Origin: Macrostomum lignano
Taxonomy: Eukaryota
Length of the DNA: 64,000 nucleotides
Direction of reading: 5' to 3'
Assembly (NCBI GenBank): GCA_002269645.1
Contig: NIVC01000901.1
Location: 76,173-140,172, forward strand
Both the position numbers and the translations under genes were made by a program. Each line of letters opens with the position of its first letter. Positions within the stretch are counted from its first letter, which is position 1. Shown piece after piece: positions 14,579-61,800 of the stretch. The notes under the pieces are model-generated. The model did no database searches, had not been told where the DNA came from, and saw only the letters and a program-made list of their open reading frames with translations.

Positions 14579-14942
14579 TCATTTCCCAGTCCGTTTCGAA
14601 CCGCCCGACCCGGTCACAATGGTGCGGAAAGTGAGATTAATCCTGGGTCCGCAACTGGCGGACTGCCGGCCGATCCTGTGCTGCCAGTCCTTCTGGATGG
14701 AGCCGCAGGTGTACAGCAGAGAGCCGGCAGACAGGGGCACGTGGACGGAGCGGAATCCTTGAATCTGTTGGCCGAAGACCACTCCGCCGATGCCGCCGCC
14801 ACCGCCGAAGCCCTGCTGAGCGACGTCAAATCGGCGCAACTCAAAGAGTCGACTGGCGCCGAAACTGACGCTGGCGATGGCCGGATTCGAACCCATCTCG
14901 CGTTCGTTGTCGGAGTGCCACGGCATCGAGTCGTTGTGGTCT
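14579..14942 (-). CDS. ALKBH3: ZnF-ALKBH3-like dioxygenase, exon 3 (catalytic DSBH core)
   Basis: Acceptor cctcag|A; joins exon 2 to read LYR-DHNDSMPWHSD. HxD (WHSD), WQHRI and RINLTFR motifs match ALKBH3; TGA at 14579-14581. Confidence 0.92.
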
Positions 14943-14945
14943 CTG

Positions 14946-15895: not shown

Positions 15896-15943
15896 GCTGT
15901 TTGAGGAACGATGTAGTTAGCCACCCTGTCTCCTCATACTCAC

Positions 15944-16788
15944 CTGTACAGAATTGCCAAGCAGGCGTTAAACGTCACTTTATCCTCAAGCGCCCGTTCA
16001 ACATCCTGTTTAATCTGCATCAGCGCTGGATGCCAATTAGAATTCTCGGGCAGGTGCACCGAGCCGTAGGAATATTTCGGCCCAACCCAGTACGTCATCC
16101 TTGGCTCAGTGGATTCGCCTTTGCCACCTGGCTTGGGCCGAGTTTTCAGCTGCTCCCACGCCAGTTCAGTGGCCAGAGTATTAAAAGTTTGGCTGGCAGC
16201 TTCAGACGAATAGAATGCCGGATCGAACCGAAGCCGAGCCTCTAAGCCGCCTCGGCTAACGCTGATGACGTAATCGCCCTTATCTCGGACAACCAGATCC
16301 GGCTGCATCACGCCGCCAAACTGCTGTTGCCGAACTCCTTGACCTTGGCTCCAGTTCGGCCGCAATCGTTTCTGCATCAAATGCACCGGCTGCATCGGGC
16401 CACCGATTGGGCGACGGTTGAACCCCGGCTGCATCAGCGAGACTGCTGACGATTGGCCACCGGCTCCGAATTGGCGTTTGCGACTGAACTGCTGCTGGTG
16501 ATGCTTCATCTGCTGGTTATTGGTGTTCTTCTCGCTAGCCCAGGCTCGCTTCCCACCGCCGACAGAGCCGGCGTTAGTTGTCCACTTTGTTGAGAATTCC
16601 TCATCTCTGCTGTAGTCAGTGCCATCGGCGCCTGTTGCAGCCTCCTCTTCATCAATGTCAGCTTCCTCTTGCTTTTGTTGCTGCTCTTCATCATCGCCAT
16701 TGTCGCTGTCTGTTCGGCAGTTCAGAAATAATTCTTCCACTTTTTGAATGACCACAGTCTTGTCCGGGTGGTGAACTTCGCTGTGCTC
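15944..16788 (-). CDS. ALKBH3: ZnF-ALKBH3-like dioxygenase, exon 2
   Basis: Acceptor ctcaccgcgcag|GAG; donor TACAG|gtgagt. Encodes EHSEVHH (end of ZnF2), an acidic/Q-rich linker and EPRMTYWVG..NWHPALMQIK..FNACLAILYR. Confidence 0.9.
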
Positions 16789-16879
16789 CTGCGCGGTGAG
16801 GAGGGAGCGGGGCCCGAATAGTGTCCTGAGTTCGATTCCTAGTCTACTCACTTTTGTAAGATTCTGAGGGACCATTACT

Positions 16880-17710
16880 TTGAGTCTGAGAGTCCACTAT
16901 TGTGAGTCTGAAAGTCCTCCATTGAGAGATTCTTAGTCCACTATTGAGATGCTGAGTCCACTATTGTCAGATTTAGAGAGTCCAATATTGTGACATTTTA
17001 AGAGTCCACTATTGAGATTCTGAGAGTCCATTGTGAGATTCTGAGAGTCTACTGTTGTGAGATTCTGAGAGTCCATTCTCGAGATTCTGAGAGTCCACTA
17101 TTGTGCGATGCTGAGTGTACGCTATTGAGATGCTAAGAGTCCACTATTGAGATGCTGAGAGTTCACTATTGAGAAGCTGAGAGTCTACCATGGAGATACT
17201 GGGAGTCCACTATTGAGATACTGGGAGTCTACTATTGAGATGCTGAGAGGCTACTATTGATATGCTGGGAGTCTACTATTGAGATGCTGAGAGGCTACTA
17301 TTGAGATGCTGAGAGGCTACTATTGAGATGCTGGGAGGCTACTATTGAGATGCTGAGAGGCTACTATTGAGATGCTGGGAGTCTACTATTGAGATGCTGA
17401 GAGGCTACTATTGAGATGCTGAGAGGCTACTATTGAGATGCTGAGAGGCTACTATTGAGATGCTGAGAGGCTACTATTGAGATGCTGAGAGGCTACTATT
17501 GAGATGCTGAGAGGCTACTATTGAGATGCTGGGAGTCCACTATTGTGGGATTCTCAGTGTCCAATGTTGTTACATTCTGAAAATCCGCTATTGAGATGCT
17601 GATGATCTACTATTGAGATTCTGAGTGTCCGCTATTGCTGAGAGTCGACTATTGTAACATTCTCAGAGTCCACTGTTGTGAGATTCCGAGAGTCCACTGT
17701 AGAGATATCT
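16880..17710. repeat. 22-bp minisatellite filling ALKBH3-like intron 1
   Basis: Unit GAGAGGCTACTATTGAGATGCT, homogeneous centre and degenerate edges; intron is 16789-17834 (1046 bp). Confidence 0.93.
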
Positions 17711-17834
17711 TGAGTCCTAATTCTAACTCTATTAAATTTGAAATATTACAGTAAAGCAACCAGTATTCAGCGACCCACAAAAAGCAACAATACGGCTACG
17801 AGCAAAAAAGCAGAAAAGTACACAGAGCACTAAC

Positions 17835-18029
17835 TTGAAGCAGATACTCGCTAGAGCAGAGCAGCTCGCACTCGCTGCATTTGTACACTACAAACTCGAT
17901 GTCCCGCTCGGGATGGCCTATGGCATGCTCGGATAGGCGTGAGAAATAAGTAGTAAAAAATTTGCACAAAGGACAATCGAATAGCAGAACTCGCTCTGGC
18001 TCGAAATTGATGTCGCTCTCAGCTTCCAT
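17835..18029 (-). CDS. ALKBH3: ZnF-ALKBH3-like dioxygenase, exon 1 (C2H2 zinc fingers)
   Basis: ATG 18029; CPLC-x12-HAIGH and CSEC...LLQ; donor CAA|gttagt in phase 0. Exons total 195+845+364=1404 nt, an exact 467 aa + stop. Confidence 0.85.
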
Positions 18030-18141
18030 GATGAAGACGGCGTAATGCGCTGATGAATCTCGAACTTAATAGTTGAAAAGTGAGTTGTTTCGAGAGAAAG
18101 CAAAATTTCGGGATTTCGCTGTGAGCTGAAGATGAAACAAA

Positions 18142-18420
18142 TTTGAATTGGCGCCAGAATGTTATTTCTGTATTTGTTTAACCGGTTTGTTACGGATTGA
18201 AGCCGGAGAGATTCTTACTGGGGGGGGGGGCGCGCACTTCACTTTCTATTTTAGTCTAAGCAATAACAATTTGAATTGGCGCCAAAATTCTCAATTCGAT
18301 AGTTTGTTAAAATAGTTAACTAATTTGTTTAAACCCGGAGAAATTCCCTATTTGAAAATAGTTTGACCCGGGGCCCTTGAGTGTGTCTTGTTATAATGAT
18401 AAGTTTGAATTGATGCTAAA
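18142..18420. promoter_or_regulatory. Repeated TTTGAATTGGCGCCA motif (CHR-like + E2F-like) upstream of the ZnF-ALKBH3 ATG
   Basis: Exact copies at 18142-18156 and 18270-18284; degenerate copy at ~18404. Confidence 0.3.
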
Positions 18421-19135
18421 TATTGCTATTTTGTTTAACCGACTGACTAAAAAAACCCAGAGAAAAATTCTATAGAGTTGTGAGCACTTGGCTTTATTAA
18501 AGTGGAGCTATTATTCATGTTAAAGTTTTCTTAATGACTTTTGCTATAGGCTGGCTAACTAAAATTATAACAAAATATTCTAACAAATTTCCTACCAAAA
18601 CATGCATTTCTTACTACTCAGTGAAAGTCTACTAAGTAGTAGGACGCTGGACATTCCGTGCTATTTAGCCATATTTAATTGGGTTATCATCGTTTTCAGT
18701 GGGAGTTTTTTTATGTTGTCCATCATTTTTGCTCACAATTAGGCACACACACACAGACAGACAGATAGGTTAATGTAACAATTGCAAACTTTGCGCTAGT
18801 CAAGCAGTTGTTGTTTGTTTCTAACAAAAAAACTAAATTAAAAACACAAAGAAACCCTAGTAGACATTGGGGACAAAAACTGACCTGGGCAGTTTCTTAA
18901 CTGACAAAGCCAATATGATAAGATCATAGATGGATCAGAATTGCAAGCAATAAATCCACACAAACTTATTCAATGGAAACCAATAGGAATGCGACTACAT
19001 TATATAACAATAAAAAATAGTGACGATATAACACTTAGTAATTAAATTTAATAATATAGAATTAATAGAAGGGGATGGAACACACACAGACACATTTATA
19101 ATATGGAGATTGCAGCAGCACAAAGAGTCAAAAAT

Positions 19136-19919
19136 TCAAACTGGTCTCCAACGGTTCATTGCGGGCTGGCCTGATTCAAACATTGTCGGCCTTGGCGGAG
19201 GCGGCTGCTGCTGCTGATGATGCTGCATGGGTCCTTGAGGAGGCGGCGGAGCAGCATGACGATAGGGTGAGAACACTTGCTGCTGTTGCATAAACTGCTG
19301 CTGCTGCTGCTGCTGCTGCCGGAAGGCCGGGAAAAACGGAGGCGGAGGCGGCAACGGAGGAGGCGGTCGAACCCCGCCACCTGTTGGCGACGTAGCCGCT
19401 GGCTGACTACTACTAACACTACTGTTAGTATTACTATGATTACTACTCATACTCATAATAGATGCATTGTTGCCGCTATTATTCAGCGAGTTCATTGACG
19501 GCATCGGCAGTGGCGGTGGCGGCAGAGGCGGAGGCTGCAGTCGAGGCCGCCAGACCGGCAGGTGCTGCGGCATCCAGCTGTCGATGGAGCTGGCCGTGAT
19601 TGGCAGCTGGTGGCCGGGCGCCGAGACGGCGGCAGTGGTGACGGCGGTGGCAGCGGTGGCCCCGCCAATGCGCTCATCGAGAGTTGGAGTGGCGCTCCGG
19701 CCGGATTGCTGCTTTTGCTGCTTCTGCGGCTGCTGATGCTGGTGAGCAGCAGACCGAGGCGGCGGCGGACTGTCGGAGCCGATGGCGATCTCGTGGCGAT
19801 GGTGCTGCTGATGATGATGATGATGATGCTGGTGCTGGTGATGCTGAGTTGATGAAGAGTGCCGATGAGCGCTGCCTTCTCGGCCGCTGCTGATGGAACG
19901 TGACGGACTGCGAGAGGAT
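19136..19919 (-). CDS. RPRD2: RPRD2 orthologue, exon 6 (His/Pro/Gln low-complexity tail)
   Basis: Acceptor ccccacgcag|A completes AG|A=Arg; open to the stop at 19136. Confidence 0.85.
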
Positions 19920-19984
19920 CTGCGTGGGGATTTCAGATGCGAATGATTTGATGTCTTTTGCTCCGCTTTTTGACACGGCATGGA

Positions 19985-20830
19985 TATAGGGAGGGTAGTG
20001 CAATAAAAACACCCTGGGAAACAGGGTGGTCCAAAAACTCCTTGAGCTTTGGTGGTCCAGTAAAAATATAATGGAAAGTAGGGTAGGGTGGTACAAAAAC
20101 ACACCTTCTAGGAAATAGGGTGGACAAAAATAATACGAGCGTAAAAAAAACGATAGAAAACAGGTTGGTCCAATAAAAGCACCCTCGGAAAAGGGTGGTC
20201 CATAAAAAACCCTGGGAAAAAGGATGGCCCAATAAAAACACCCTGGGAAGCAGGGTAGTCCAATAAAAACACCCTGGGAAGCACGGTGGTCCAAAAACTC
20301 CTTGAGCTTTGATGGTCCAGTAAAAATATAATGGAAAGTAGGGTAGGGTGGTACAAACACATACCTTCTAGGAAATAGGGTGGACAAAAATAATAAAAAT
20401 AACCGATAGAAAACAGGGTGGTCCAATAAAAACACCCGGGGAAACAGGGTGGTCCAATAAAAACACCCGGGGAAAAAGGGTGGTCCAATAAAAACACCCG
20501 GGGAAACAGGATGGTCCGATAAAAAACCCAGGGAAAAAGTATGGTCTAATAAAAACACTATGGGAAAAGGGTGGTCCAATAAAAACACCCTGGGAAGTAG
20601 GGTGGTCCAATAAAAACACCCTGGGAAGCAGGGTGTTCCAATAAAAACACCCTGGGAAGTAGGGTGGTCCAATAAAAACACCCTGGGAAGCAGGGTGGTC
20701 CAATAAAAACACCCTGGGAAACAGGGTGGTTCAATAAAAACACCCTGGGAAGCAGGGTGGTCCAATAAAAACACCCTGGGAAGTAGGGTGGTCCAATAAA
20801 AACACCCTGGGAAGTAGGTAACAAATAAAA
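19985..20830. repeat. 31-bp minisatellite in RPRD2 intron 5
   Basis: Unit GGGTGGTCCAATAAAAACACCCTGGGAAGCA; intron is 19920-20960 (1041 bp). Confidence 0.92.
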
Positions 20831-20960
20831 ACACCATGAAATGGGTGGCGTGAAGCACAGTATGATTAAGAAGAGGGTGGCCCAATAAAAAAGACAGCAG
20901 ACAAAGAAACTGTGTTTTGTTTAACACTCGTTTAGTTTTTTTTTCAATTTCAGAACCCAC

Positions 20961-21607
20961 CTAGAAGATCGCTTTCGACTGTTGCCGCTCTTGCCGCTAA
21001 CCGGTGCCCGATCACGATGCCCGACGCTGCCGGCGCCTCCGCTACTTCCGCTGTGTCGCCTGTGCTTCCGGTGCCTGCGTTTGCTGCTCTGCTGCTGCTG
21101 GTGGTGCACGGCAGCCCCCTGGCCGTTCTCATCTCCGCTATCGATCTCCATCTCATCCTCGCGTCGGCTTAGAACGGCTACTTCTGCGCCAAAATCGTCG
21201 GCCGTGTCAGCTGGCGGCGACGGCGCCTCGGGCGAGTCAACAAGTCGATCTTCAACTCGTCGACGCATAAAAGCGACCATCTCGCCGTATTTTTTATAGG
21301 CTGTCACGACAACATTAACGTCGGAATATTGAGCGGCAAAGAACATGTGAGCTTTTTCTAGTAGCGACAGTAGCGCCTCTCTACGCTCTTCCAGGCGTTC
21401 TAAATCGCGGACAAGATCTTCGAGTCGTTGGCAGGATTCTTCAAGCTGCTGACGATAGGCCTCGCCGTGGGAGCGATCTTTGATCTGGCGTACAGCAGCT
21501 GGACTGTGAATCTCTGAGGAGATCATGCAGCCTAGCTGGCGCTCCTTTGACGCCGTGTCAGTCTCCATGATGAGGAACTCTTTTAGGGCGGAGATGACCG
21601 AGTCAGG
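20961..21607 (-). CDS. RPRD2: RPRD2 orthologue, exon 5 (coiled-coil region)
   Basis: AHMFFAAQYSDVNVVVTAYKKYG resembles RPRD2 AGIFYEAQYKEVKVVANAYKTFA; acceptor ccacag|CCT, donor AG|gtgggt. Confidence 0.9.
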
Positions 21608-35771: not shown

Positions 35772-37025
35772 ATGTCGCACAGCCGATTTTGGTTAATGCT
35801 TTCTGTTACCATGGTAATACTCAATCAATCTGTTCATTCCAAGAGAGATTATCAAATAGAATTGATGAAGTATCTGAAGAACAACATCACGGACTACAGT
35901 CCGATAGTTCGGCCAGTGTTGGACCCGGACCAGGTGATGCTATTCAATTTCACCTTTCTGCTCAGCCAAATTGTAGCTGTGGACAGCGCTAAGCAGACTG
36001 TCAAGATATCCGCTTACCTTCAGGCTGGCTGGACCGAGGAGCGGCTGGTCTGGGATCCGGCCGATTTTGGAAACGTGACTGTCATGGACTGGGACTCCAG
36101 TCAAATCTGGTTCCCCGTGATTCTCATTTACAATGGCGTAGGCGACAACCAGCTGCTCAAGCCGCAGTTTCCCATAATCCTCACTTCCAGTTCGCCCAGG
36201 GCAACAGTTGCAGAGACAACCTGAGAGCAGGAATGGGAGTTCTCCTGCAAATTCGACATGAGCCTATTTCCATTCGACAAGCACGTCTGCGACATGGAAC
36301 TGTTCTGCAGCGACCAAGGTCGGGGTCACCATCTTCTCCAGCCTGCCATTGGCAACCCAATGAACAATGAGCTGGCGATTTACGTCGTTAATAGCGAGTG
36401 GAGACTATTGAATCTGAGCACATTCGTGCATCTGAGGTACTACGAGATGCTCAAGGGCCAGCCAAAGTTGCCGCTGCCAAGCTACGTTATTCGCATGACT
36501 GTCGAGCGCGTGTCCAACTACTATCTGCTGAACGTGGTGGCTCCCCTGCTGCTGCTAACGCTGCTCCAGTTGCTGATTTTCATCGTGCCAGTCGAGTCCG
36601 GAGAGAAGCTGGGCTTCGGCATCACCATCATGCTGAGCTACACGGTGTTCCTGCTGCTGCTGGACGGCCTGCTGCCCAAGTCGCAGTCAATGCCGGCCGT
36701 GGCGTCCTTCATCACGGCGGCCATGGTGCTGTCGTCGCTGTCCCTGCTGCTCACGTCCGTCGTGATTCGATTCCACTTCGCTGCGGACACCCAGTCGATG
36801 CCGCCGTGTCTCCGTCTCGTGTTCGTGACCTGCCTGGGACGCCTGCTGTGCACCTCCACCAGCGACTCGAAGGTGGACGTCGGTGTCGAGGGCGCTCATC
36901 GACCGAGCCGCTCCGACTGGGTGGTGGCGGCGCTGGCCCTGGAGAGGCTGATGGCTTTGGTTGGCAGCGTTGCCATCGTTGTCATCTTTCTTGGGTATCT
37001 GCTGGCTCCGTTCGCAACTCACTGA
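35772..37025 (+). CDS. Intronless Cys-loop ligand-gated ion channel (nAChR-like, non-alpha) with one in-frame TGA at 36222-36224; readthrough gene or recent pseudogene
   Basis: ORFs 35772-36224 and 36258-37025 are in the same frame. Signal peptide, RPV, WxExRLxWDP, WFPVILIYN, Cys-loop CKFDMSLFPFDKHVC, four TM helices, GEK before M2. Confidence 0.9.
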
Positions 37026-39663: not shown

Positions 39664-41635
39664 TTACGAACTCTGCTGAAATGGCACCAAGCAGAACAGC
39701 ATGTCGGAGTTCAACAGACGAAACCCGGACCCAGGATTGGTGATGACCACTCGCTTAGTAGTCTGCAGCTCAACGGTGCTGTAGCTGTCGCGATACCGGT
39801 ACACCCCCAGCGGGAGGATGCCGTGCGACTTGAACACGCCGGTGAACAGGTCGCCGAATGTGCCCTGCTCGTGCGGCCTCAGTCGCGGATCCAGCATGGA
39901 CAATTGCATCGCTCGACATCGATGCCGATTAGCTTGAATCTCCGGCGTCTCCTCCGTGCCATCCAGGTTGAGCCCCTCGGCCATGAGCACCTCCATCTCG
40001 GGCGTGGCGCCGCCAGTCACCAGTGTGCGAATCAGCGTCATGGCGTTCATGTTGTGAAACACGGTTGACATCAGCGAGTCCAACACCCCGGCCGTGAACG
40101 CGTTGCCGCAGGCGTACGGCTGCGAGTTGTATATCTCCTCTTCATCGGCATCATCGTCCTCCTGATCGAGGAATTGAATATTCTTACCGACGAAGATCTC
40201 GGTAAGAATGGGCACCGCCACCTTGGCCAGTAGGGACTTCGATTTGGCGTCTTTGCTCTGAAAGGCTTGCAATTGAGCCTGCACACTGGTGTCGAGACCT
40301 TCGGCAAATGACATTGCTTTGATGTTGAGCGTGCACAACACCACTTCCTTGTCCATTAAGTAGGGATCCACCTGGTCCTTCCACCTCGACTTGGCGCTCA
40401 GTATGACGCACATGTCGCACAGGTTGATCTTGGCGCTCCGCAGGATCACGCGGTTCATTGGCGAACCGGGAAACATGTAGATTTTTGGGAAGTTCTTCAA
40501 CGAACCCCATTCGCGTTGAAGGAAGTCGAGATTGCCAATAAAAACGATTGGCCTTAGCTCGTTCAGACGGAAGTTGCTGGCCCGCAGAGGCATCACGAAG
40601 CTGCGCAGTCCGATTAAAGGCGAGTCGCTATCGGCGAACACGATGACAACGTAGTGCTGCCTGAGGTCAAGTCTTGCAACGCTATTAGGCGTCAGCATAA
40701 CGTCCTCAAAGTTCTTGTCCGGACACCAGTGGAACATGCCAGTGAGATCAAAGTACTCCACGGACTCTTTTCTCGGTTCGACAAATTCGCCAAAATTGTC
40801 CTCTGAGCCGAACTCGGCCTCCTTCAGTGTGGCGAGCGCCTTGTTAGACACGACTTGAATCTCTGGCCGACGAACGTTGGCACTGTTGCCGCGAAGTCTG
40901 GTCAACTCGTGCGTCTCCCCGCAGCAGTGCCCGGAATCGACTCCGGGAGCACCTGCCGAATCCTCAGCGCGTGTACAGCTGCACGCCTTGATCTGCTTCG
41001 GCTCGGTAACGTCGCTGTGACACTTCCGACAGTACAGGTAGGCTCGTCGCACCCCCTCCTGCGAGTCGGCGATGAAAAATCCGTGGCAGCCGTGATAGAT
41101 GACGGTGTCCCTGCCGCTGGGGTTGATTGACAGAAATCTGTCGCCGTCATCGCTTTTGTCCTCCATCGCAAAGAGGAGAATCCCCAGTTTGTTGAAGCTG
41201 ACTTCCACTGCGTCCTGGAATGGCATGCCGACAAATGAGTCGCTGAAGTACTCGGAGTAGATCTCCATTGCGCTGCCAATCTGGTAGTCCTTCTCCCAGG
41301 TGTTGGCGCGAACTGATTTGCACATGGCTCTGGTAGAGAACAGGTTCGCCATCAGAGTAGAAAAGCCAGGCGCCAGGCAGCTCTGCGCCAGGAAGCCCTG
41401 CTTGAGCTCGGCGAGGCAAACGCATTCGTCACCGAATCGCCAATCCCAGTTCGGTATGTTCAGCAAGTAGCCTTTGTTGTGATACTGCAGCAGCTGGATG
41501 ATGCAGCGAGTTGTTGGCGAGGCATTTTTTATCGAAATGACACGCATGATGTTTGAAGCGTCCTCTGCGTCCGGGTCCTCGGTGTGCTTGTTGCCGAGGA
41601 CGATCACGGCTGAGGCTGACTCAAGATCGACTCGT
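39664..41635 (-). CDS. KCNMA1: Slo1/BK Ca2+-activated K+ channel, exon 3 (most of RCK1 + RCK2, Ca bowl)
   Basis: Acceptor cccttaacag|A reads Q-RVDLESASAVIVLGNK; LAELKQGFLAQSC, CRKCH, Ca bowl QFLDQEDDDADEEEIY..QPYACG. Confidence 0.95.
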
Positions 41636-45897: not shown

Positions 45898-46346
45898 AAG
45901 TCAGAAGGATGCTTCAGTAAGCAGAATGTTGATTGGAGCAATGAAGAATTTTTTCATTAGCTAAGTGAAAGCTGCTTGAGGCCCAAGGCGGCGTCAGGGC
46001 AGGAGAGTCCATCGTAAAGAAAATCCAATCATTTTCCAAGCTGCATTTTCAGCTGTTTGCTTCCACAAGCTCACCATGGCTGCCCCAGAGCATCTTTGCG
46101 CATAATTGGATTTTCTGGCAACCCAGCCTCTAAAAAGTGCACCTCCTTCTTCACTTCCTCTGCCTTGGGAGTAAACAGAAGCAGAAATGCAAGTAGATCA
46201 TTTGTACGACGTCCTACCATTTGGAATATTTAAGTTCTGTTTTCCTTTTTTACCCATCGCGGTTTGCGTAGCGTTGGTTTTTATGCAAATCGGGGTGTCA
46301 GCGTCCTCCAACGATAATAAATTACGCACAAAACTTTGCAACTCAC

Positions 46347-47312
46347 ATTCGGATTGCTGTAGTCACTCTGCGGATCTCCCGTGTTCTCAAACAGGTGCGT
46401 GACCCCGGCTCCGATAAGCCAGACGCTCAGGAAGATTGTGATCATCTGCAGGGAGCGGATGATGGCTCCAGACTTGACGGCGCTGACGCTCTGCAGCACG
46501 TCTGGCAGCGTCATGACTCTCAGGCTGCGCATGAACCGGAGTCCCAGCCAGGACTGGCTGAGGCACAGGCTCACGAAGGCTGGCGGTACAGTGCAGTAGT
46601 CCACCACCGAGTAGAGCTCCAGCCAGAACCAGAACTTGTCCTGCGCAGCCAGAAACCTGATGCAGAAAAACAACAAGAAGACGGTATTGAAAGCCAGGTC
46701 AGCCTGACTGAGTGGATTCCGCGACCAGGGCGTGCAGTTCTCAGTGGACCCGATTAGCTGGTTGGCCTCAATGATGTAGATTCCTGCCGACGAGATGCTC
46801 AGAACAAAGACTAGCACGGCTAGGATTCGACCGCTGACGCTTTGTGCGCTGATCAAATCGCTGGCCCAGTCGCGAATGGCTGAACTGCCGCTCGCTACGG
46901 AGCTGCCAGTTCGAGTGGCGTTGGGCGCGATTGCGACGCCGTCTTGTTGCTGCTGCTGCTGCTGCGAGCTTGTTGCTGCGGCTCCTGGCGCGATAAGCGC
47001 GCCCCCGCTGCTAGCGCTTCCGCTTCTCAGTGACTTCTGCTGCTCGTGCACCTCGTACTGATGATGATGGTTGCCGCCAGTCCCGGGGCGACCGCGCTGA
47101 CGCCGTTGAAAGAGTTTGATCAGCCGGTTAACTACTCGGTAGAGCACGAGAAAGAGCAGTCCGCCCAGGAAGGCCAGGGCTGTCGAGGCCAGATGGTAAT
47201 GCCATCGGCGCTCCGTGCAGGCTTGGACGCTGCCAGGGGCTGTCGGCAGGACGGGAGCGGACCTGGTTGCAACGTTTGACGTATCGTTGAAAGCGGCAAT
47301 TGTTGCGACCAT
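46347..47312 (-). CDS. KCNMA1: Slo1/BK channel, exon 1 (S0-S5)
   Basis: First in-frame ATG 47312 (the ORF-track start at 47357 is TTG); DWASDLISAQS..GRIL, S4 LRFMRSLR; donor AAT|gtgagt. Total 3363 nt = 1120 aa + stop. Confidence 0.92.
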
Positions 47313-49165
47313 GTCGGCTCCAGTTGGCAGAAATGATTTCGGCTGCAGCTCCAGCAACGCGTGGCCTGTTGCGCGCTCTGTTGCGATGCGAATCTCCCTT
47401 GGATTTTTTGAATTAAGACCGGGCCCCTCTTCTATAGTTGGGAGGCTTGCAGTGCGCGCCCAACCAACCTTCGTAATGCCCTGCTAGCTCTCTGTCTCTC
47501 TGCCTCTCTTACCCTTTTCCAGTATTTTCTCCTCCTCCTCCTAGAAGCCTTGAAGCAGACAGCAAATGAAAGATCAGAAGGAGAGAGAAAGAGGGTTGGG
47601 AGCCGAGAGGGAGAGGGAGCGCAAGGAGTACGCAACACGTTCAAATAGCTACACACGCACACACTATACGATGCCCTCCCGAACTATACCATAGCAAGCT
47701 GACACTTCCTGGTTGAAGGCTACCTGGAATTGTAATATTTCTTTCCTAGATTTTTCAGTAACATATTTCCAGCAATATATTTATTTAATCAGCTTGGTTG
47801 GCAACGCTAAAATATACAATGGTCAATGGGGACACTAAATGCGTCCACTTCCTTATGGTTAGTGCGTTAATGCTCAGAACGTGTTGTTTAAAACTTTACC
47901 TATCCAAAAATGACGGATGTAGCTAGGGCCAGCTATGGGTTCTACCTTCCCATTATCAGTGCTACATTTCCCCAGCGCGTGCATTCTCGTATCTGCATCG
48001 GTCGCCACACACCAAACATCCCTTGGGCAGATTCAAATCCGCACACACTCCAACGAAGCCATTATTGCATTCCGATGTTAAATATCAATAGAGCCAGTAG
48101 AGCGCCCACAAGAACTACCGCATGTTTGAAATTGGAAAGGTTATTCAACATGTACGAGTTAAGTACCAAGTACGCGCAGGGCCATCCAAGAGCCCAAGCT
48201 TGAATGCAATGCAGATTACTATCCGAAGGAAAAAACTTTCACGGACGGACGGAAGATGTTAACTGAGATCAGGAAATTACAGCTCACTAAATAACTTTCG
48301 GATCAACAGTGAATAAATGCGGGGTGCTACTCACCTATATGAAGCGACATTGTTCAGGATATTAAATCATTTTGCGATCACCTGTTTCCTGAAGATATTT
48401 ATTGAGTAATACACTGTACACTTCTCTATTAAGGCGCTGCGAACCATGGTGGTCAGGAGGAACAAGACCGTGCTCCATGTCAGGTGGAATGTTTTTCCAC
48501 TGTAAACCACAATTGGAGAAAATATTCGCAAAAGAGTTGCAGACACCCTGGCGCAACGCCTTCTGGATAGCTCTGCCCACTCAGCGGACTCCTGTGCTCA
48601 CCAGCGCGCCAGCACGCAGATAGTGTTTGCCAGCACGTCTGCGAAAGTCGGACTCGTTTACGTCTGAGCTCAGAATCAAGCGTTAACAAACAAACGTTTA
48701 ATGGATTACGTTTATGCGCGGGATATGAGTAGATTTTCTACTGTTACTAACCATGCCCTTCATTAATTATTCCCTCAACGCAAAAACCCCAGAAATGTAA
48801 ATTCCGCGCATACATCAAGACGATTGCATGGTGGGAAAACTGCACTTCAATGCCAGAAGTTGTAAACAGTGCAGTTCCACTTCACCTTATCCGCGTTCCT
48901 TGTTTGCAAATACAAGCGGAGCACCCTCAGCGCTTTCGGGCTGTCTTTCTATGATAAGAGCAAAAAACTGTGGATCGGTTCCTTGTCAACACGAGAAATT
49001 CATATTTACCTGGTGCGCCAGAATCTTGAGGGCTTAGAACCACCGATGTTTTTATCGGCAAGCTATGTTGAATACATTATGCAAATACATATTTAGGAGT
49101 AAATTAAATGAAAAGTTATGGTCTTAGAAAAAATGTGTTTCCATAGCGACCATGAAAAGCTAGGA

Positions 49166-49400
49166 GGGGGGCATTTGTAGCCTAGTGGTGAGAGCGTCAG
49201 ACTCACGACGAAAGGTCGGGGGTTCGATTCTCAAGCAAACTCGGAAAAATTTGTCCTTGAGCAATACACTTAACTCTGCATTGCTTCAGATCACCCAGCT
49301 GTAAAATGGGTGCCAGCATTAATTGGGGCAATTGAGGGTGCGTGTGGCGACCCCCAGTCCTTGGACTGAACAGCCGTACGCAGCCTTTAGATATGCGCGC
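49166..49400 (+). mobile_element. tRNA-derived CORE-type SINE, copy 1
   Basis: A box TAGCCTAGTGG, B box GGTTCGATTC, then TGTCCTTGAGCAA..CACTTAAC...CTGTAAAATGGG resembling the MIR CORE domain. Confidence 0.8.
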
Positions 49401-49755
49401 AACAGATAGCTGCGCTCCTGTTTAAAAAACGTATCAACAAAAAACGCACTGGAAAACAAAAGAACACAAACAGACGAAGCATCAGATTGATGGAAAGGAT
49501 GCAAAGTAAGCAACTTACAAGAACAACAAATAGTTACAGAAAAAGTACTTATTTCGTTTTGTTTGCGCAATGGAACAAATATTACTGAGAATTTTACAAC
49601 TGTGTATGTGAAAAAATACGAGAAAACTTGTAATACTTTAGCGATTGCTGCATGGTTTACAAGCGGTCTGTGCCGACAACTGTAACAAATATTAAATAAA
49701 CTAAAGCATTTTTGACGATCATCTTATCGAGACAGTTTTCACTGCTTGTTAAACG

Positions 49756-50474: not shown

Positions 50475-50720
50475 GGAGGGTGTAGCCTAGTGCATGGTGA
50501 GAGTGTCGGACTCACGACTTGAAGGTCGGGGGTTCGATTCTCGACCCTCTGGAACAATTTGTGTCCTTGAGCAAGACACTTAACTCTGCATTGCTTCAGT
50601 TCACCCAGCTGTAAAATGGGTGCCAGCATTAGCTGGGGCAATTGAGGGTGTGTGTGACGACCCCCCAGTCCTTGGACTGAACAGCCGTACGCAGCCTTCA
50701 GATGCGCCGCGCAATAGCTG
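50475..50720 (+). mobile_element. tRNA-derived CORE-type SINE, copy 2
   Basis: Colinear with copy 1: TAGCCTAG..GGTTCGATTC..TGTGTCCTTGAGCAAGACACTTAAC..CTGTAAAATGGGTGCC. Confidence 0.8.
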
Positions 50721-52171
50721 CGGCTGAGCTGTCGGTTGCACATCTGGCCATTAGGGCAGGTGTAACAAATAAATTGTTGTTAGCTATTATTAATCGCTTC
50801 GCGTGTCGTTCTATATTCACAAGCAGAGGCACCTCTTAATAAAATATGAAATAATAAATTTTAAAATATGCGATATAACTTTGCTATACTTGACTTTCTC
50901 AGTGACTTCGCGAGTTCCGCATATAGTGCTCCACATGACATAAATGATAAAGTCATAGGCTCGTATAAACATGTCATTATAATTCTGCAATGTGCTTGCA
51001 GGCATTAATAATGCAGCATTACCTAAATAAATAATTAGTGTAAGTTAAATATATTGCTGACACTTGAAACAATAATTTTACACATACAGACCAAAAGTTA
51101 AAAATACAATTATATAACAAGATGGTCAAATTACTTACGAAAATTACAATATAATCTAAATGTAGAGTAACATTGCTACACGTATATTGAGTCAATTGAC
51201 TCAAAAAAGTGCTTGAAATATTTCACTACGGTAGATTGGCTTTTTTACATTTCTTTAAAATACACAGTTTGAATAGGATCAGCTGGACTTTCTTATTGGA
51301 TCTATAACTTTTTTTTTACAGTCTGAGTCTCTTTAGACGTTGAAAGTAATGACGGCACAGAGCTGCTGTATACCCTGTGTGAGCGGGTGTATGAGTGCGT
51401 CCTGTGTACAGTATAGGCGCTCTTGCATGTGCAAATAATAATATGAGTGAGCTCACTAGGATGCTCAGGCTTGGGCGCCGTGACTGCATGCCCCTCTCGC
51501 TAGTTGCGGGTCTTAACCTGATCGAAGGAATATGACCTGGTAAAGGCCAATACATTCCCCAAAAATCATTAATCACTGCCGGCCTACATATAACATACTA
51601 TAAGCCAGAATCCCCACCTATGCATAATCGATATCGCCATTCAAAGCGATTTTATTCGCCCGATGCAAAAGAATGAAAAGAAATTTCGTATGAAAGCTTT
51701 TGTGTGCTCTGCACTAGGAGGTTGGGACATGGCATGATGTGGCTTTAATAAAAATTGATTAACTTTGTATTTTTAAGCATATAATTCACGGTTGCACAGA
51801 AATATTAATGCTAGAGGACACTCCAACACAGACTTTGACTACGACTCGTGTACAGTCCCCAAGGGTTACAGTGAAGAACTTTCGTCTACATTTTTGAGAT
51901 CGGATAACTGCAAGCTGATTAATTCCCTGGCACAAGTTCTGCATATGCTAATATAACCAGTACAGAGAATCACTTTGGTTAAATCTCTTGAGTCCCCGGG
52001 TGGTTCCTCGAGTAATCAACGTCCTTGTTAGCTAGTTGTTTACTTTTATCCTTCTGCCTGGTGAGTCACATAGAGAGCCACATGTAAATGTGATAAATTC
52101 ATTTTAGCTGCGAATTTGTAATGCAAATCGACTGCATGCGCGATAGAATGTAGGGAACCCCAGCGTGGGCC

Positions 52172-52470
52172 CCTGACAGTCCCAGAATGTCAGTCCTGAC
52201 AGCCCCAGAATGTCAGCCCTGACAGTCCCAGAATGTCAGCCCCGACAGTCCCAGAATGTCAGCCCTGACAGTCCCAGAATGTCAGCCCCGAGAGAGCCCC
52301 AGAATGTCAGCCCTGACAGTCCCAGAATGTCAGCCCCGACAGTCCCAGAATGTCAGCCCTGACAGTCCCAGAATGTCAGCCCCGAGAGAGCCCCAGAATG
52401 TCAGTCCTGACAGTCCCAGAATGGCAACCCCCGAGAGCCCCAGAATGACAGCCCTGACAGCCCCAGAATG
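52172..52470. repeat. 23-bp tandem repeat (CAGTCCCAGAATGTCAGCCCTGA)n
   Basis: ~13 copies. Confidence 0.9.
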
Positions 52471-52489
52471 GTAGCCGTGACGTGTCTAT

Positions 52490-52655
52490 GAAATTTGCTT
52501 GCGAGAAGTTTGCTTGCCGAAGTTTGCTTGCGGGACTTGCTTGCGGAAATTTGCTTGCCGAAGTCTGCTTGCCGAATTTTGCTTGCGGAATTTTGCTTGC
52601 CGAAGTTTGCTTGCGGAATCTTGCTTGCCGAAGCAAACTTCCCGCAAGCAAACTT
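52490..52655. repeat. ~14-bp degenerate repeat (AAGTTTGCTTGCCG)
   Basis: ~10 copies, ending in inverted GCAAGCAAACTT units. Confidence 0.8.
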
Positions 52656-53345: not shown

Positions 53346-54213
<868 letters not shown>

Positions 54214-54222
54214 GACTCGCAG

Positions 54223-56837
54223 CTAGAGTCGAAGAGTCGCAAACTCTGCGGCAAGGTGATTCTCCACAGGTTCGGTACCCGCAGAACCGCTGTCACCGTC
54301 CAGCCGTTGCGGCCCCAGAATCAGCCACGTCTCCTCGGCGAACTCGGCGGCCAAGTTCGCCAGCTCGTAGGCGGTGCGGCAGCCGTCCCAGCCGGACCAG
54401 TCGGCTGCCAGATGTTGCTCGATATCGCCAACCCGCAGTTCTACCTTGTGCTTCTCCATGTTCACTCCGTAGATCCAGCGAATGAGCCAGCGGTTTTCCT
54501 CCTCCAGAATTCGTCGCTCGCGATTCGCCATGAAGTCGAACTTCCAGCTGGTGGCTTTGGCATTGCAAAAGTTGGCGCTCATTTTTTTAATTCCGGCGTG
54601 CAGAAATTCGCGAATTTTTTCCGCAGTTCGCAGACTTCGATTTCTGCGAATCGCCTTCATCAGTGCTTCTGCTTCAAGCGCTTTTTTATCCGCTTTGGAC
54701 TGCATCTCCCTCAGCTCCCGGTTGTACTCTGGATCCGACTTTAACCTCTGCTTCATCTGACTGAAAGCGTGGATGTAGGAGAACTCTTCGGATGTCTCGC
54801 TTTGGAACTGATGAGCAAAGGACCGGTCGAGCAGCTCCTTGGCTTCCTTCAGAGTGAGCACGATCGAGTTGCAGCACTCCTCTGTGGACCCTCTGCCTCG
54901 GCAGTGCAGCTTGACTGCTTCGAACCTCGCCTGTCGCATCAAGTTGCCGCGATCGCTGCCTGCTGCTGCAGCCGGAGCTGCGGCCGCTGTGCTGACGGAG
55001 CCGAGCTCCAGCAGGTCCCTCACTCGTTTGCGCACCGCGTCAGCCACATTTGACTGATCAGCCGCATTGCTGACGTAGTCATCAGCCAGGTTTTGAGCTC
55101 GGGCGCACAGCTCGTAAACGCGACGGCTGAAAAACATCAGACTGGAGTCCCTGGCCCTTTGCGAGTCACCCCCGTTCGCCATTTCCAACACCCGTTTTAC
55201 AAGGTCAGTTTTGCAGTCGTTTAAGAAGTCGAACACTCTTAGTGCAGCTTCGTGACGACCAAGTTGTAAGCAGAGCTCAATGTCTTCCAGGCTGGCTTGT
55301 GGGTTCTGTAGAAGGGCTTCAGTCAGCAAATCGTCTCTACGTGTACCGTCTGGCAGGTCCGAGTCGCCCGGTAACTGACTGAAACAGTCGAAAGCCAGTT
55401 GGTACTTGTGTTCCTTTAAATAGAACCTCCCCAGGTGCTCCCAGGCGAAATGGTTGCGCTTATTTCTCAACAACCCTCTGTGAAACTGATCCTCGATGTG
55501 AATGCTGTCTTGGCGCTGAATGCAGGACATGATATTAGTGCGAAACCAGGCCTCATATTCTTCATGATCCGGCCAGTTTTGTAATGCTTGCAGAATTTCC
55601 TCATATTGATAGTCCTGAAAGTTCTCCACAGCATCCGGACACGTCTTGAATGCTAGCAGGTATTCCTCGAAGCCTTCTTCGTTTCGGCTGCATTTAAACA
55701 AATAGTGCGCCTTTCTGAAGCGAATGCATGCAATGACCCGGTCATATACGCGATAGTTTGACGCCAGCAGGGAGTCAAAGGATTGGAGCGTATTTTCTAT
55801 TCCAACATCCTCAGCTTCCAGCTCAATGAGTTCAAGGTCGACCCAGTGGTTACCAGGGTGCATTGCAGCATTTTTACCAATTCTGAGTGCCTCCAGAGCC
55901 TTCTGTTTATCGCCATTTCTCATATGCAGTCTAGAAATCTCCACTAAGTTGGAACTTTTGCATCGGTCGACTGTTTGTGCTAGATCAAGGAGCTTATAAT
56001 ACTTTCCAATTTTTTTAAACCTTTTGTAAACTTTTATACCAATAAGAAAAGCTACCGGGTGCTTGGCCTTCTCGTCTCTTCCCAGCCGTTCCAACAGTTC
56101 AACTGCTTCATCCATCAAACTTTCGCACCACGCGGTCAGAGCTCGGTCGCTAAGCACCGCCTCGGAGAAGTTGGCACAAAAAGTCGGGTTTCGGATTCCA
56201 TCCCTGGTGGAAATCTCGTAGGCTCGAGTCCATAGGTTCAGCTGACTCTCGGGGATCTCACCGGGTCTGCCCTGTCTAGTTTGCCGGGCCAGCAGGTACG
56301 CTTTCCCCAAAGCCATCTGAAGTTGTCTGGCTGCAGCTCCAAGGCCAAGCCGTAAGCCTCAGCTCCTTCTTCGTACTTCAGCGGCCCAAAGAATCTTAGA
56401 GACGCGCCTTTGATGCCATAGACGGTCGCTCTGACGTCGGCGCTGCCCTTCCATTGGCTGGTGAGCTCGGCCAGCTCGTCGCCGATCTCGTGATGCATCA
56501 GCGGCCGACCCCGCCGGATCTGGCGGATGCACAGCCGCATGGAGGACAGGATGAAGCCGCTGTGCCGCCAGAAATCGTCCGTGTCGCGCACTTGTTCAGC
56601 TTCATCAAGGAATTGCTGCGCCTTGGCGAAGTTCGGAAACGGTGGCAGAGTTGATAGGTAGCTAAGGGTGGTCAGGTAGACAACTGACATCTCAGAGTCT
56701 GACAGCCTGTACTCCAGCAATCGTTCAATCACCTGGTCGATGTTGGTTTTTGTGCTCGACTTCTCTGGTTGCCATAGAAAGTGGCATTCCAGACTCGGCA
56801 GATTAAATGGAGCAGTCCTTTGAAGTGAAGCGTCCAT
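54223..56837 (-). CDS. Intronless IFIT-like TPR protein (~871 aa if the -1 frameshift at 56301-56307 is bridged) with a putative HEPN-like C-terminus
   Basis: LECHFLW (recalled IFIT5: LECHFTW); KGASLRFFGPLKYEEGAEAYGLALELQPDN (recalled IFIT5: KGWALLKFGGKYYQKAKAAFEKALEVEPDN); TPR-like AWEHLGRFYLKEHKYQLAFDCF. Two overlapping ORFs of 199 and 697 aa. Confidence 0.75.
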
Positions 56838-57599: not shown

Positions 57600-58010
57600 G
57601 TTTGCGTACTGACCCTGGCTGCGGTCCTCCACTGACACGCGTACAACGCGGTGTCCGTCGGGACTAGGCTGCTCGAGCGTACGACGCACGACAGCCTACA
57701 GACTCGCGTATAGATAGAAGTGCCACGTTGGTCCATCGCTCGTAGCCGATCTTGAATATTTCGCGCAGCAGACCAGCTGTGCCGCGTCTACTTGTTGGTC
57801 GAGTGAGTCCGTCAACGTCCAGGTCTCAGCGTTGTACAGCAGGACGGTCTCGATCACTGCTTGAAACAGTGCCAGGGCAGTCAGACAGGGCCTCAGACTG
57901 CAGGGCTTCCCCTCACAGAACGAAAGGCAGCCAAGACACGCCCACGGCGACGCTAAAGATCCACGCGTAAGCCAGAAACCAGACCGCTGAGGTAGATGAA
58001 CTGCTGGCAA
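57600..58010 (-). mobile_element. RTE-like non-LTR retrotransposon fragment, second copy
   Basis: LFQAVIETVLLYNAETWTLTDSLDQQVDAA, homologous to the 6-kb fragment. Confidence 0.7.
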
Positions 58011-58275
58011 CGCAGAATCTCCGTCGACTGCCTCCGCACTAAATTTCAGCCTCGATGTGCTCTAGCAGGCAGTGCACGGCTGGTGCAACGCTAAAATTAA
58101 TTTTCCTCTTCCGACAACGGCGTCTCTGGCGGAAGTATGGGATTGTCTGGCAGCGGGGTGGTGGCGCGTTAACAGTGGCGGTGTAGAGATCTTCGAAATA
58201 CAGTGCAAGCAGACTACTAGAAGCAGTAAGATAAAAATTTGCACAACCAAAATTTTTAATGTCACGCGATCAAAA

Positions 58276-58809
58276 CAAGGACGAAAAGACGGGAAACCTT
58301 GTTTCTTAGAAAAATTTAGAAGGCGGCTTTTCCCGGAAAAATACACTACGGAGATAGGAAGTTTTCATTTTTTCAGCACAAAAATTGTTATTGCCATTGA
58401 TAGGAGGCAGATCCAAGGCTCATCTTTTGATATGTTGTGCCTTACTTATTGCTCTATCGATATTTGTAAAACTTATCGTTCAAAAAATTAGGATTCAAAT
58501 TTAATTTTTTATTTTACGTACGTTTCCTGTACCTAAAAAAATAATAATGCATTGTACAGCTCCAAATCTTTGGTTTTATGAATCCATTTTATCATTTTTG
58601 CTACGCATATTTGTTACACAGTCAGCTAAGAATGATGAAATAGACTCATAAAATCAAAGAGCCAAGCTGTGCCATTTTAATGGTTTTTAGGCACTAGACG
58701 TGCACAAATATACGTAGAATAAAAAATTAACATGGAATCCTAATTTTCTGAACAAAAAGCTTTATGAATATCGATAGAACAATAAGAAAGGCACAACATA
58801 TCAAAAGAT
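58276..58809. mobile_element. Truncated, diverged copy of the P-like foldback element
   Basis: Shares AAAAATACACTACGGAGATAGGAA, GATAGGAGGCAGATCCA and the internal/right-arm sequence with 31646-32344; right TIR cut at ~58809. Confidence 0.85.
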
Positions 58810-58819
58810 ATGTTGTGCC

Positions 58820-61800
58820 TAAGCGGTTGAGCTGCCCGATACAGTCGAGGACTGTACGCGAGCAGGTGGTGCTGCGCTCAAGGGCGTGAATCGCCGCTTG
58901 GCTGTCTGATTGGAGGGTTATTTCCTTCCCCCAGACGCGCTGATTGTACAGCTCCATGGCGCAGGAGCTAATGGCGAGAACTTCGTTCTGGAAGACGGTG
59001 GAGCAGGTGCCGGTGTGTTGGGAGAAGGTCGCCATAGTTCTCCCTCCAGACACGATGCAGTAGCCGTATCCAGAGGCGGAGTTGATTTGGGACCCGTCAG
59101 TGAAGCAGTGGATTTCATGGGGTTTCCAGTTGTCTCTCGCTTCATGGCGTGGTGGAATGCCTCTCGCTGCTTCCAGGTCTCGCAGGCTGAGGTCGCCATG
59201 CGGCCGGAGGTTCCGCTTTCTGAAGGCAAACTGCTTCTGGATTTGGACACCCGCGTCAAGCAAACGTCGGGTGGTCTTCATTGCCTCCCCTCTGACATAA
59301 AGGTCGAGGGGGGATGTCCAAGAAGGAGTTCATGCCAGCGAAGGGCGTTGAGGGAGCTGCGCTCATGATAGCTCGACAAGCGCGGCCTTGCACCCTATTT
59401 AGAACCTCAAGAACCCCTTTCACCTCTAGGGCACTGTTCCAAATGAAGCCGGCGAAGGAGATGGCCGGTCTAACAATGGCAGTGTAAATCCACCAGAGGC
59501 GGCGGGGGGTGAGGCCCCAGGTAGCGCCGAAAGCTCTGCGGATCTGCGCGAGAGTCGCGAGAGCTTTGCGGGCTTTGGTTTGGACGTGCGGGGTCCAGCT
59601 TAGCTGTGGTCGAGGGTGACGCCCAGACATCTGGTTTGTTTCTCCATGGCAACAGGTTTGCCATAGAGGGAGAGCGGTTCGATCCTCCAGTTTCGGCGGC
59701 TGGTGAACATGATAGCCACGGTTTTAGACTCAGAGAACCTGAGACCGCAGCTGTGTGCCCAGCGTTCGGCACGGTGGATGAAGGCTTGAAGGAGTCCCTG
59801 AGGACCGCGGGTGATGGTCCAGCCACAGTGGCGGTAACATCATCCGCATAGCCGACCTTCTAAACTGGGTCCGGATGCGGGCTGCAAAGCAGCTCGTCCA
59901 TGACTATATTCCAGAGGATCGGGCTTAGGAGAGGATCGGGCTTCGGGCTTAGGACTTGCGGTCCGCCTTTCTGGACTTCCACGGAGCGCGAGTGTCCCAG
60001 GAGGCGCGAGGTGGCAGTACGATGGGAGACCATGTACATGATCCAGCGAGTGAGGTGCTCGTGCGTGCCCCGGGATTCCAGGGCCCGCTTAAAGACTTCA
60101 AAGAGCACATTATTGAAAGCATCATCAATGTCGAGGAAAAGCGAGAGCGCGTATCCATTGCCAAGCACGGCGTGCTCCAGCTTGTCGACAATGGCGTGCA
60201 GCGCACTTTCGATGGAGCGTCCAGAACGAAAGGCGTGCTGGTTAGGGGAGAGCGGGGAGTTCCTCAGCTCTACGAGGAGAAGGCGCCAGAGCACCAGCCG
60301 TTCCATCAGTCTCCCTTCCCTGGCTTGGGTATGAAGACTACCGTAGCCTCTTGCCAGGCTTTTGGCACGTACCCAAGGGTAATGCTGGCCTTGAAGAGGT
60401 TGCAGAGGAGGCCGAGAAACCTGTCATTTATAACTGCCTCATGGAGGAAGGCAGGATAAATGTTGTCAGATCCTGGTGACTTGAAAGGAGAGAAGTATTT
60501 TGCGGCGCGAGCCGTCCTCTCTCTAGTAATGATGGTCGAAGCCAGGATCTGTCCGCCCGGAGAGTGGTCCGGTGGGCCTAGCTGCTGTGCGGCACGTGGG
60601 AAAGAGCTGGTGAGCATGATGTCCAGCGATTCCCCAGGGTTCTCAGCGAGCCGGCCGTCCGGTCTTTTAATAACTGAGAGCTTTTACATTTTGTCAAGAG
60701 TGAGAGCCTTAACTACGCGCGAAGTGGGGCGGGTGCCTTCTAACTCCGCGCAGTATTGGCGCCATTTGTCGGACTTGGCTTTCCTGGTTTCACGCTTAAA
60801 GTCGCGGATCGCTTCTTGGTAGGCGGCCAGGTCAGCTGGGTCCTTGCTCTTGCGAGCTTACGGTTGGAAGCACTTTACCTTGCGCCGGAGGGATCCAAGC
60901 GCCGGGTGCAAACAGGGGGCGGATATTGTGCCTTTGTAGGCTTTAAGAGGACAGGAAGCCTCATGGGCTGTCAGGACGGTCTTGCTGAGCAAGTCTGCAA
61001 GGTCATCCACTTCCTGACAGATGGTTGGAGCGGCGGTAAACAGCTGATCTGTCTGGCGTTTCAGGGTTTCCGTGAAAGCCGTCCAGTCAGTGTTCCGGAC
61101 GTTCCTTTTCCACAGGATGTGAGGCTTGGGGCAAGAGGATTGCAATCGGAAACGAACGAAGCGATGGTCAGACAGAGATTCCTATTCGTCCCAAACCTCC
61201 CAGTCCTTGACTAAAGGAGTCAAGCCATGGGAGACGAGGGTAACGTCGAGGGCCTCCGTCCATCGCCCGTTGTCAAAGGTGGGGGTTCCACCAATGTTGC
61301 AAAACTCAGTATTGGTGGTGCAGATGTAAGCAAGGAGTTCCTCGCCTCTGCTGTTGGAAGTATTATTGCCCCAGTGGGTGTGGTGAGCGTTGACGTCGCC
61401 CGCCACCAGCAGCTCGAACCTACAGTTAGAGCAGTAGTCCACGAGGGAGATGAGGTTGGGTGGAACCGCGGGGCCATCGCCAGGGATATAGATCGAGGCG
61501 ATGATGACCGTGCGGTTGGTGATAATATGGTTGAATTGAATCACACAGAGATCTCTGTCAGAGAGGTCCGGTCTGTGCCAAGCTTTGAGATGGGTAGACA
61601 CGAACATGGCTGCTCTGGGGTTTTGGTGGTCTTGAAAACAGTCAAAACCAGCAGGAATATTCAGAATCTTACCTTTCTTTGTCCAGGGCTCCTGGAGTAG
61701 GATGATGCCCGGTTTCGCAAAGTTTGCCACCCGCATCAGGTTGGTCGAGGCCGCGATGCAGTGGTGTAGGTTTAGCTGCAGGATGTCCACTCCGGGGAAT

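Follow-up and report, generated by a model that had tools for sequence, protein, structure and literature searches.

A flatworm gene family with a probable, remotely IFIT-like N-terminal module joined to a TPR array and a C-terminal domain of its own

The 64-kb stretch of flatworm DNA analysed here (contig NIVC01000901.1; hereafter the window) carries on its minus strand, at 54223-56837, a single-exon gene of ~870 codons. We interpret it as a member of a flatworm-restricted family of single-exon genes in which a remote IFIT-like N-terminal module is followed by a tetratricopeptide repeat (TPR) array and by a C-terminal domain of the family's own, and we assign this reading a probability of roughly 0.6. 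The gene is divided by one frame break between two open reading frames (ORFs) on the minus strand: ORF1 (56238-56837, 199 aa) begins with the ATG and holds the N-terminal piece, while ORF2 (54223-56316, 697 aa) holds the remainder of the protein, its own ATG being incidental and not the true start. ORF1 and ORF2 were analysed as separate pieces, and an intact relative from Macrostomum lignano (PAA92423.1, here P0001) was used for full-length work. An earlier note on this DNA had described an IFIT-like protein. That description stands for the N-terminal ~175 residues; it does not stand for the IFIT-sized, intact coding sequence that was envisaged, since the product is ~870 aa long, frame-broken and extended by an extra domain of ~340 aa.

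The IFIT-like module and the TPR array

IFITs are the products of interferon-stimulated genes, and IFIT5 and IFIT1 are interferon-induced TPR proteins that clamp 5'-triphosphate (5'-PPP) or cap-0 RNA ends. A pentapeptide in their loop L1, CHFTW at about residues 18-23, is invariant in IFITs (PMC11462223). The window protein has its equivalent, LECHFLW, at 56772-56792 (minus strand), exactly where the earlier note had placed it, and the motif cysteine is residue 18 both here and in IFIT5; the N-terminal sequence of ORF1 reads MDASLQRTAPFNLPSLECHFLW. Across a six-frame translation of the window CHF.W occurs once, against 0.055 occurrences expected from shuffles. Within the family the pentapeptide is CHFLW in the window copy (residues 18-22) and CHFTW, CHFNW or CHFKW in relatives, with one CPFSW; CHFTW itself is present in both main M. 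lignano groups. Further along, the segment KGASLRFFGPLKYEEGAEAYGLALELQPDN (56322-56411, minus strand) pairs with residues 144-173 of IFIT5 and shows KG..L..FG...Y..A...ALE..PDN, the pattern to which the earlier note had pointed, and its KG pair stands at residue 143, compared with 144 in IFIT5.

The region that would correspond to IFIT subdomain I spans 56304-56801 on the minus strand (ORF1 residues 13-178). ORF1 alone gave IFIT5 as its best match in the PDB, weakly (E 0.011) and colinearly (13-178 against 13-179). When a family N-terminal profile of 186 positions was used instead, the six best PDB matches were all IFIT5 or IFIT1 (IFIT5 at E 4.5e-8, five IFIT1 chains at 1.3e-5 to 9e-5), IFIT2 and IFIT3 were weaker, and profile positions 5-172 ran colinear with IFIT residues 13-179. 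Non-IFIT TPR proteins appeared from E 0.0017 and covered just the last ~25 positions. Alignment of the same profile by hhalign with IFIT5 13-175 plus IFIT1 13-179 gave a probability of 96.8% and an E of 2.5e-10 over 157 columns. The reverse search, with a hidden Markov model (HMM) of the IFIT5 and IFIT1 segments, covered 478 stop-to-stop segments of the window and returned ORF1 as the sole match (E 0.001; the next at 3.3); it also recovered the intact relatives. The likeness is thus to IFITs in particular and goes beyond that shared by TPR proteins in general. Taken from sequence, homology of the N-terminal ~175 residues with IFIT subdomain I is very probable.

The first ~550 residues of the protein are modelled as a TPR-type helical array, whose continuation beyond the module occupies 55177-56307 of the window (minus strand; ORF2 residues 4-380). 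Pfam finds TPR in ORF2 below threshold, at residues 125-166 and 290-314 (TPR_2 18.1 bits against a cut-off of 27), and above the cut-off in P0001 (TPR_2 38.6 bits); canonical TPR units lie mid-array, between positions 436 and 496 of the family profile. Modelled by AlphaFold2 with a 13-row family alignment, P0001 has ~30 helices and a predicted local distance difference test score (pLDDT) of mostly 80-94 over residues 1-555. The further TPR-like helices that had been noticed after the IFIT5-like segment are thus borne out. A Foldseek search of the PDB with this model was led by three IFIT5 entries (E 2.3e-8; template modelling (TM) score 0.45-0.47, normalised to IFIT5; ~550 columns). The alignment spans the whole IFIT5 chain, and the IFIT1 entries reach TM 0.48-0.49. 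On this comparison of predicted with known structures IFIT5 ranks first, narrowly over generic TPR superhelices, and the similarity of the whole array favours IFIT without being decisive.

Several observations weigh against kinship with IFITs. Identity to them is merely 15-22%, and sequence similarity is below threshold past residue ~186: a longer family profile did not extend the IFIT alignment past 175, owing to an insertion in most members, and a single intact relative reached 186. In Foldseek the TM scores to IFITs stay below 0.5 with a root-mean-square deviation of ~10 Å, and the TPR arrays of OGT (E 8.9e-7), Ski3 and Ctr9 come within one to two orders of magnitude of IFIT5. We also found no paper naming the M. 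lignano gene ids or IFIT-like flatworm proteins, and none linking TTC22 with IFIT evolution. The notion is not entirely new, since some invertebrate proteins receive an 'IFIT-like' label from automatic annotation. A survey of IFIT evolution found no IFITs outside jawed vertebrates and judged the closest invertebrate BLAST hits to be unrelated TPR proteins (PMC3688568). The survey and the Foldseek scores, together with the fact that Pfam recognises only TPR families, would suit a generic TPR scaffold whose resemblance to IFITs stems from convergence or from shared TPR ancestry and says nothing of IFIT origins. However, the resemblance resides in a non-canonical N-terminal module, where CHFxW stands at the identical residue number and 160-170 residues are colinear. 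Generic TPR superhelices (the OGT TPR domain 1W3B, Ski3, Ctr9 and consensus CTPR) share the helical-repeat fold but do not match this module, bar one helix of 25 residues, and both the hhalign probability and the specificity of the reverse HMM speak for IFITs. We therefore regard a generic scaffold as improbable and retain a remote IFIT-like module as the preferred reading.

One gene in two reading frames

ORF1 residues 13-179 match P0001 7-180 and ORF2 residues 4-667 match P0001 179-885, and a second relative, P0021, gives the same picture. At the P0001 locus in M. lignano both parts lie in one frame and one exon, and P0021 is a single exon of 877 codons. ORF1 and ORF2 thus correspond to neighbouring stretches of shared relatives, and the relative itself is read in a single frame throughout. 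This makes the locus one single-exon gene, with a product of ~870 aa and one single-base frame break. Its ATG, at 56837, is contiguous with the coding exon and has an in-frame stop three codons upstream; its stop codon is at 54223-54225. The ~2.6 kb coding region holds the one break and no other stops, both termini are natural, and the C-terminus lies where those of the relatives end. The frames of ORF1 and ORF2 differ, and the 116 bases at 56243-56358 (minus strand) are the sole interval open in both; here the homology switches from the frame of ORF1 to that of ORF2, so that the final ~20 residues of ORF1 are out-of-frame read-through. The coding sequence had been given as 55300-56837, which is not one ORF but parts of two frames, and coding runs 1.1 kb further, to 54223. 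The gene had also been called intronless as in IFITs. A single exon it is; the comparison is loose, most IFIT genes having two exons (PMC3688568).

No intron fits the junction, because homology with the intact relatives crosses it without a gap and the right-phase GT..AG intervals are only 14 and 20 bases long; an intron was ruled out on these grounds. The overlap of 116 bases between the frames and the presence of the 20-base interval in the right phase could still be taken to mean that the frames are joined naturally, through splicing of a very short intron or a programmed ribosomal frameshift. We consider this extremely improbable. Excision of the 20 bases would remove conserved residues, the frame upstream of the interval does not match the relatives, evidence of a slippery site was not found, and the M. 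lignano relatives need neither an intron nor a frameshift.

The break is about equally likely to mark a very recent pseudogene or a one-base mis-assembly of an intact gene. That the window copy is dead, a recently pseudogenised paralogue whose function would be carried by intact paralogues elsewhere, has somewhat less than an even chance. Besides the break itself, several facts are consistent with it: exact-product look-ups recorded no gene product identical to ORF1 or ORF2, the closest annotated protein is only 36-39% identical, the flanks consist of a decayed long interspersed nuclear element (LINE) and a long microsatellite, and duplicated copies are described as numerous in Macrostomum genomes (PMC10468722). 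Against a dead gene stand the single break with no stop across ~2.6 kb, the natural termini and the retention of the residues conserved in the family. Short G/A runs are abundant in the stretch that holds the break, and such homopolymer runs are a common place for single-base assembly errors. A second frame-broken gene in the window would have tipped the balance towards assembly error. Three overlapping minus-strand ORFs at 19136-21568 were weighed as such a case and ruled out, being low-complexity repeat sequence open in several frames.

The C-terminal domain, the family and its putative role

The last ~340 residues form, according to the models, a separate helical domain that is peculiar to the family. 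Its all-helical core is encoded at 54307-55176 (minus strand; ORF2 ~381-670) and bears the motifs FFSR..YE.CA, DRGNLMR, LDRS, W...W and AAEFAEETW. AlphaFold2 predicted ORF2 328-697 as all-helical, with a predicted TM score (pTM) of 0.81 and a mean pLDDT of 77.8. The domain belongs to no Pfam family and has no sequence match in the PDB, and the best Foldseek scores, E 0.47 in the PDB and 0.26 among the predicted viral structures of BFVD, are not significant. Most of its conserved columns are hydrophobic, aromatic or charged pairs, and no catalytic set stands out among them. The final ~130-180 residues of the domain recur outside the IFIT-like context, once in P0008 (M. lignano PAA78669.1, 1001 aa; residues 357-496) and twice in P0014 (570 aa; residues 104-276 and 378-555). 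This recurrence in otherwise different sequence settings suggests that the end part may be an independently mobile module.

An exhaustive phmmer search of 1.84 billion representative proteins with ORF2 returned only 16 relatives. Those with names are all M. lignano hypothetical proteins, and the top match is P0001. Two relatives, PAA92423.1 (BOX15_Mlig030191g2; 1062 aa; E 9.5e-91), which has an extra low-complexity tail, and PAA75149.1 (BOX15_Mlig006963g3; 877 aa; E 1.5e-121), are each encoded by a single coding exon and have the same architecture end to end: an N-terminus with LECHFTW, a TPR array and a C-terminal domain with AAEFAEETW. Both are intact, whereas the window copy has one frame break, and identity is only 34-39%; at this distance the window gene would be either a separate paralogue or the orthologue of a different Macrostomum species. 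The window protein is itself colinear with the family from end to end, from the LECHFxW module through the TPR array to a C-terminal domain ending in AYDVAHLAAEFAE. Since the M. lignano paralogues share just 25-54% identity with one another, the family evolves fast. The remaining relatives lie on eukaryote-like contigs of the ENA assemblies ERZ25074608 and ERZ26859043, as single ORFs and once as a tandem pair; the pair, on contig L002 of ERZ25074608, occupies 10001-12610 and 16666-18762, ~4 kb apart, and its second member lacks the CHFxW N-terminus. No paralogue of the gene is present elsewhere in the 64-kb window. The family thus consists of small numbers of fast-diverging, cytosolic, all-helical proteins of ~870-1100 aa, and has so far been found only in M. 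lignano and in eukaryotic contigs of the two ENA assemblies. The repeats of the window are shared (71-96% identity) only with M. lignano loci, which points to M. lignano or a congener as the source, and ordinary animal genes are present in the window too. With the closest relatives also from M. lignano, the attribution of the DNA to an invertebrate genome was right.

The likeness to human IFIT5 (PDB 3ZGQ and 4HOR) and IFIT1 (5W5H and 5UDI) comprises CHFxW at residues 18-22, an N-terminal module colinear over ~165-175 residues that includes KG..FG..Y..AL..P.N, equivalents of R186 and Y156, an all-helical TPR array and coding essentially in one exon. IFITs are proteins of ~460-490 aa and ~24 helices, with three subdomains arranged as a closed clamp and nothing else. 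The flatworm protein departs from this architecture in length (~870 aa against ~480) and in the number of array helices (~30 against 24), which tell against an IFIT, as well as in its added C-terminal domain of ~340 aa and in the K150 and helix-2 phosphate contacts, which are not conserved. Some vertebrate IFITs are single-exon. The typical IFIT gene, however, has two exons, the first comprising the ATG plus two bases (PMC3688568), whereas the flatworm family is single-exon with a contiguous ATG. A further point against IFIT identity is that no interferon-stimulated response element (ISRE) is found upstream of the gene, the sole instance of GAAANNGAAAS in the window being at 2122; nor does the 64-kb window hold a gene cluster of the IFIT type. 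No interferon system is known from flatworms. Because the family departs from IFITs in its size, its extra domain, its gene structure, the missing ISRE and the K150 position, we do not file it as IFIT, and it is best described as an IFIT-homologous N-terminal module plus TPR array fused to an orphan domain.

IFIT5 contacts RNA through E33, T37, Q41, K150, Y156, R186, Y250, R253, Y254, R260 and Q288, and by mutation the strongest of these contacts are K150, R253 and R186 (PMC9677429). Y156 is matched by a tyrosine conserved in the family. R186 aligns with a conserved Arg/Lys column, represented by R186 in P0001 and by R11 of ORF2 in the window (56284-56286, minus strand, within the array). K150, by contrast, is not kept: its equivalent is Phe in the window protein and Cys in most relatives. 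The equivalents of Y250, R253, R260 and Q288 are acidic or hydrophobic, in an alignment that is itself non-significant. Both results speak against binding of the IFIT5 kind. The equivalents of E33, T37 and Q41 shift among three alignments and are conserved in none. The array retains about nine conserved basic columns (R98, K137, K144, R186, R189, K260, K272, K377 and K386 in P0001 numbering), and the isoelectric point (pI) of the TPR part, 5.4-7.2, is acidic to neutral. IFIT-style binding of RNA ends is, judged from these residues, possible. The older, interferon-independent role in RNA sensing that the earlier note had proposed is unsupported and still hypothetical, since neither K150 nor the helix-2 contacts are conserved, only R186 and Y156 are kept and an upstream ISRE is missing.

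If the protein works as an IFIT-type clamp, a linear ligand would sit in the groove of its TPR array, and the C-terminal domain would couple ligand binding to partners or to self-association. A defence-type role appears the most likely setting because of the lineage-specific paralogues, the tandem pair and the intronless genes, although we place it a little short of even odds. That the ligand is an RNA 5' end, as for IFIT1 and IFIT5, is unlikely; we rate it low because just two mappable RNA-contact residues are kept. The protein may instead be a protein-protein adaptor or oligomeric scaffold that does not bind RNA ends, a tentative reading which nonetheless deserves serious weight. Most TPR proteins are adaptors or scaffolds, and IFIT2 and IFIT3 are partly so. 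The lack of conservation at K150 and the helix-2 contacts, the pI of the TPR part with its few conserved basic columns, and the large extra helical domain, whose conserved motifs are hydrophobic and aromatic and whose invariant residues do not look catalytic, are all consistent with such a role; the conserved equivalents of R186 and Y156, the basic columns of the array and the fact that the nearest structural relatives are RNA-bound IFIT5 and IFIT1 argue against it.

Surroundings of the gene and significance

A perfect (ATAG)n microsatellite of ~215 units (53355-54215) begins eight bases past the stop codon of the gene and yields a spurious minus-strand ORF of 317 aa. Two minisatellite arrays neighbour each other at 52171-52481 (unit of 23/94 bases) and 52490-52633 (unit of 14/28/42 bases). 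Directly upstream of the gene lies a decayed retrotransposon without long terminal repeats (non-LTR), at ~57696-61790 on the minus strand, with endonuclease-like (61182-61790), reverse-transcriptase-like (59860-60306) and RNase H-like (58727-59281) pieces and a C-terminal fragment (57696-58010). The pieces fall in three frames, and at least three frame changes, as well as stops, interrupt the pol-type gene. The same repeat family is found upstream of an M. lignano relative of the gene, on NIVC01000052.1 (L001); its relative orientation there is opposite, and the arrangement is therefore not synteny. Two further stretches of the window, 49164-49414 and 50520-50786, are 81-90% identical to a repeat at 14623-15099 of that locus, the strongest pointer to the genus from which the DNA comes.

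Farther away, two large minus-strand exons ~4.7 kb apart (39664-41607 and 46281-47357) encode a calcium-activated potassium channel of the Slo/BK type, one with BK_channel_a, RCK and Slowpoke_C, the other with the Ion_trans pore domain. A Cys-loop ligand-gated ion channel is represented by its transmembrane region (Neur_chan_memb, E 1.8e-16) in a plus-strand ORF at 36258-37025. On the minus strand, 20921-21568 is an ORF with a CREPT/RPRD1-like C-terminal coiled coil, followed as far as 19136 by a tandem peptide-repeat and Q/P/H-rich low-complexity stretch open in several frames, and an ORF of 311 aa at 15940-16875 has a weak match to 2OG-Fe(II) oxygenases (AlkB-like; E 2.5e-4, below the Pfam cut-off). 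For the ORF neighbouring the gene, an exact-product look-up found no identical product on record.

As a frame-broken copy this locus has less practical value in itself, and intact relatives are already present, unnamed, in the public M. lignano annotation. The family itself brings an orphan helical domain of ~340 aa that is predicted to fold confidently and has no relative in the PDB or BFVD. It is conceivable, though we think it rather doubtful, that the IFIT module, comprising the CHFTW loop, subdomain I and the TPR clamp, predates both vertebrates and interferon, and that macrostomids have expanded a set of interferon-independent proteins sensing the 5' ends of non-self RNA in which the clamp was fused to a new helical effector or oligomerisation domain. 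A precedent is offered by Mx, likewise an effector long tied to vertebrate interferon. The Mx dynamin-like GTPases are an unrelated family and serve as precedent only; their orthology has been shown by phylogeny. If the homology of the N-terminal module is true, the origin of the IFIT module would move from jawed vertebrates to at least the bilaterian ancestor, the alternative being a striking convergence on the CHFxW module. Such an older IFIT module would parallel Mx, which predates interferon and has been kept and expanded in the same flatworm (PMC11789081).

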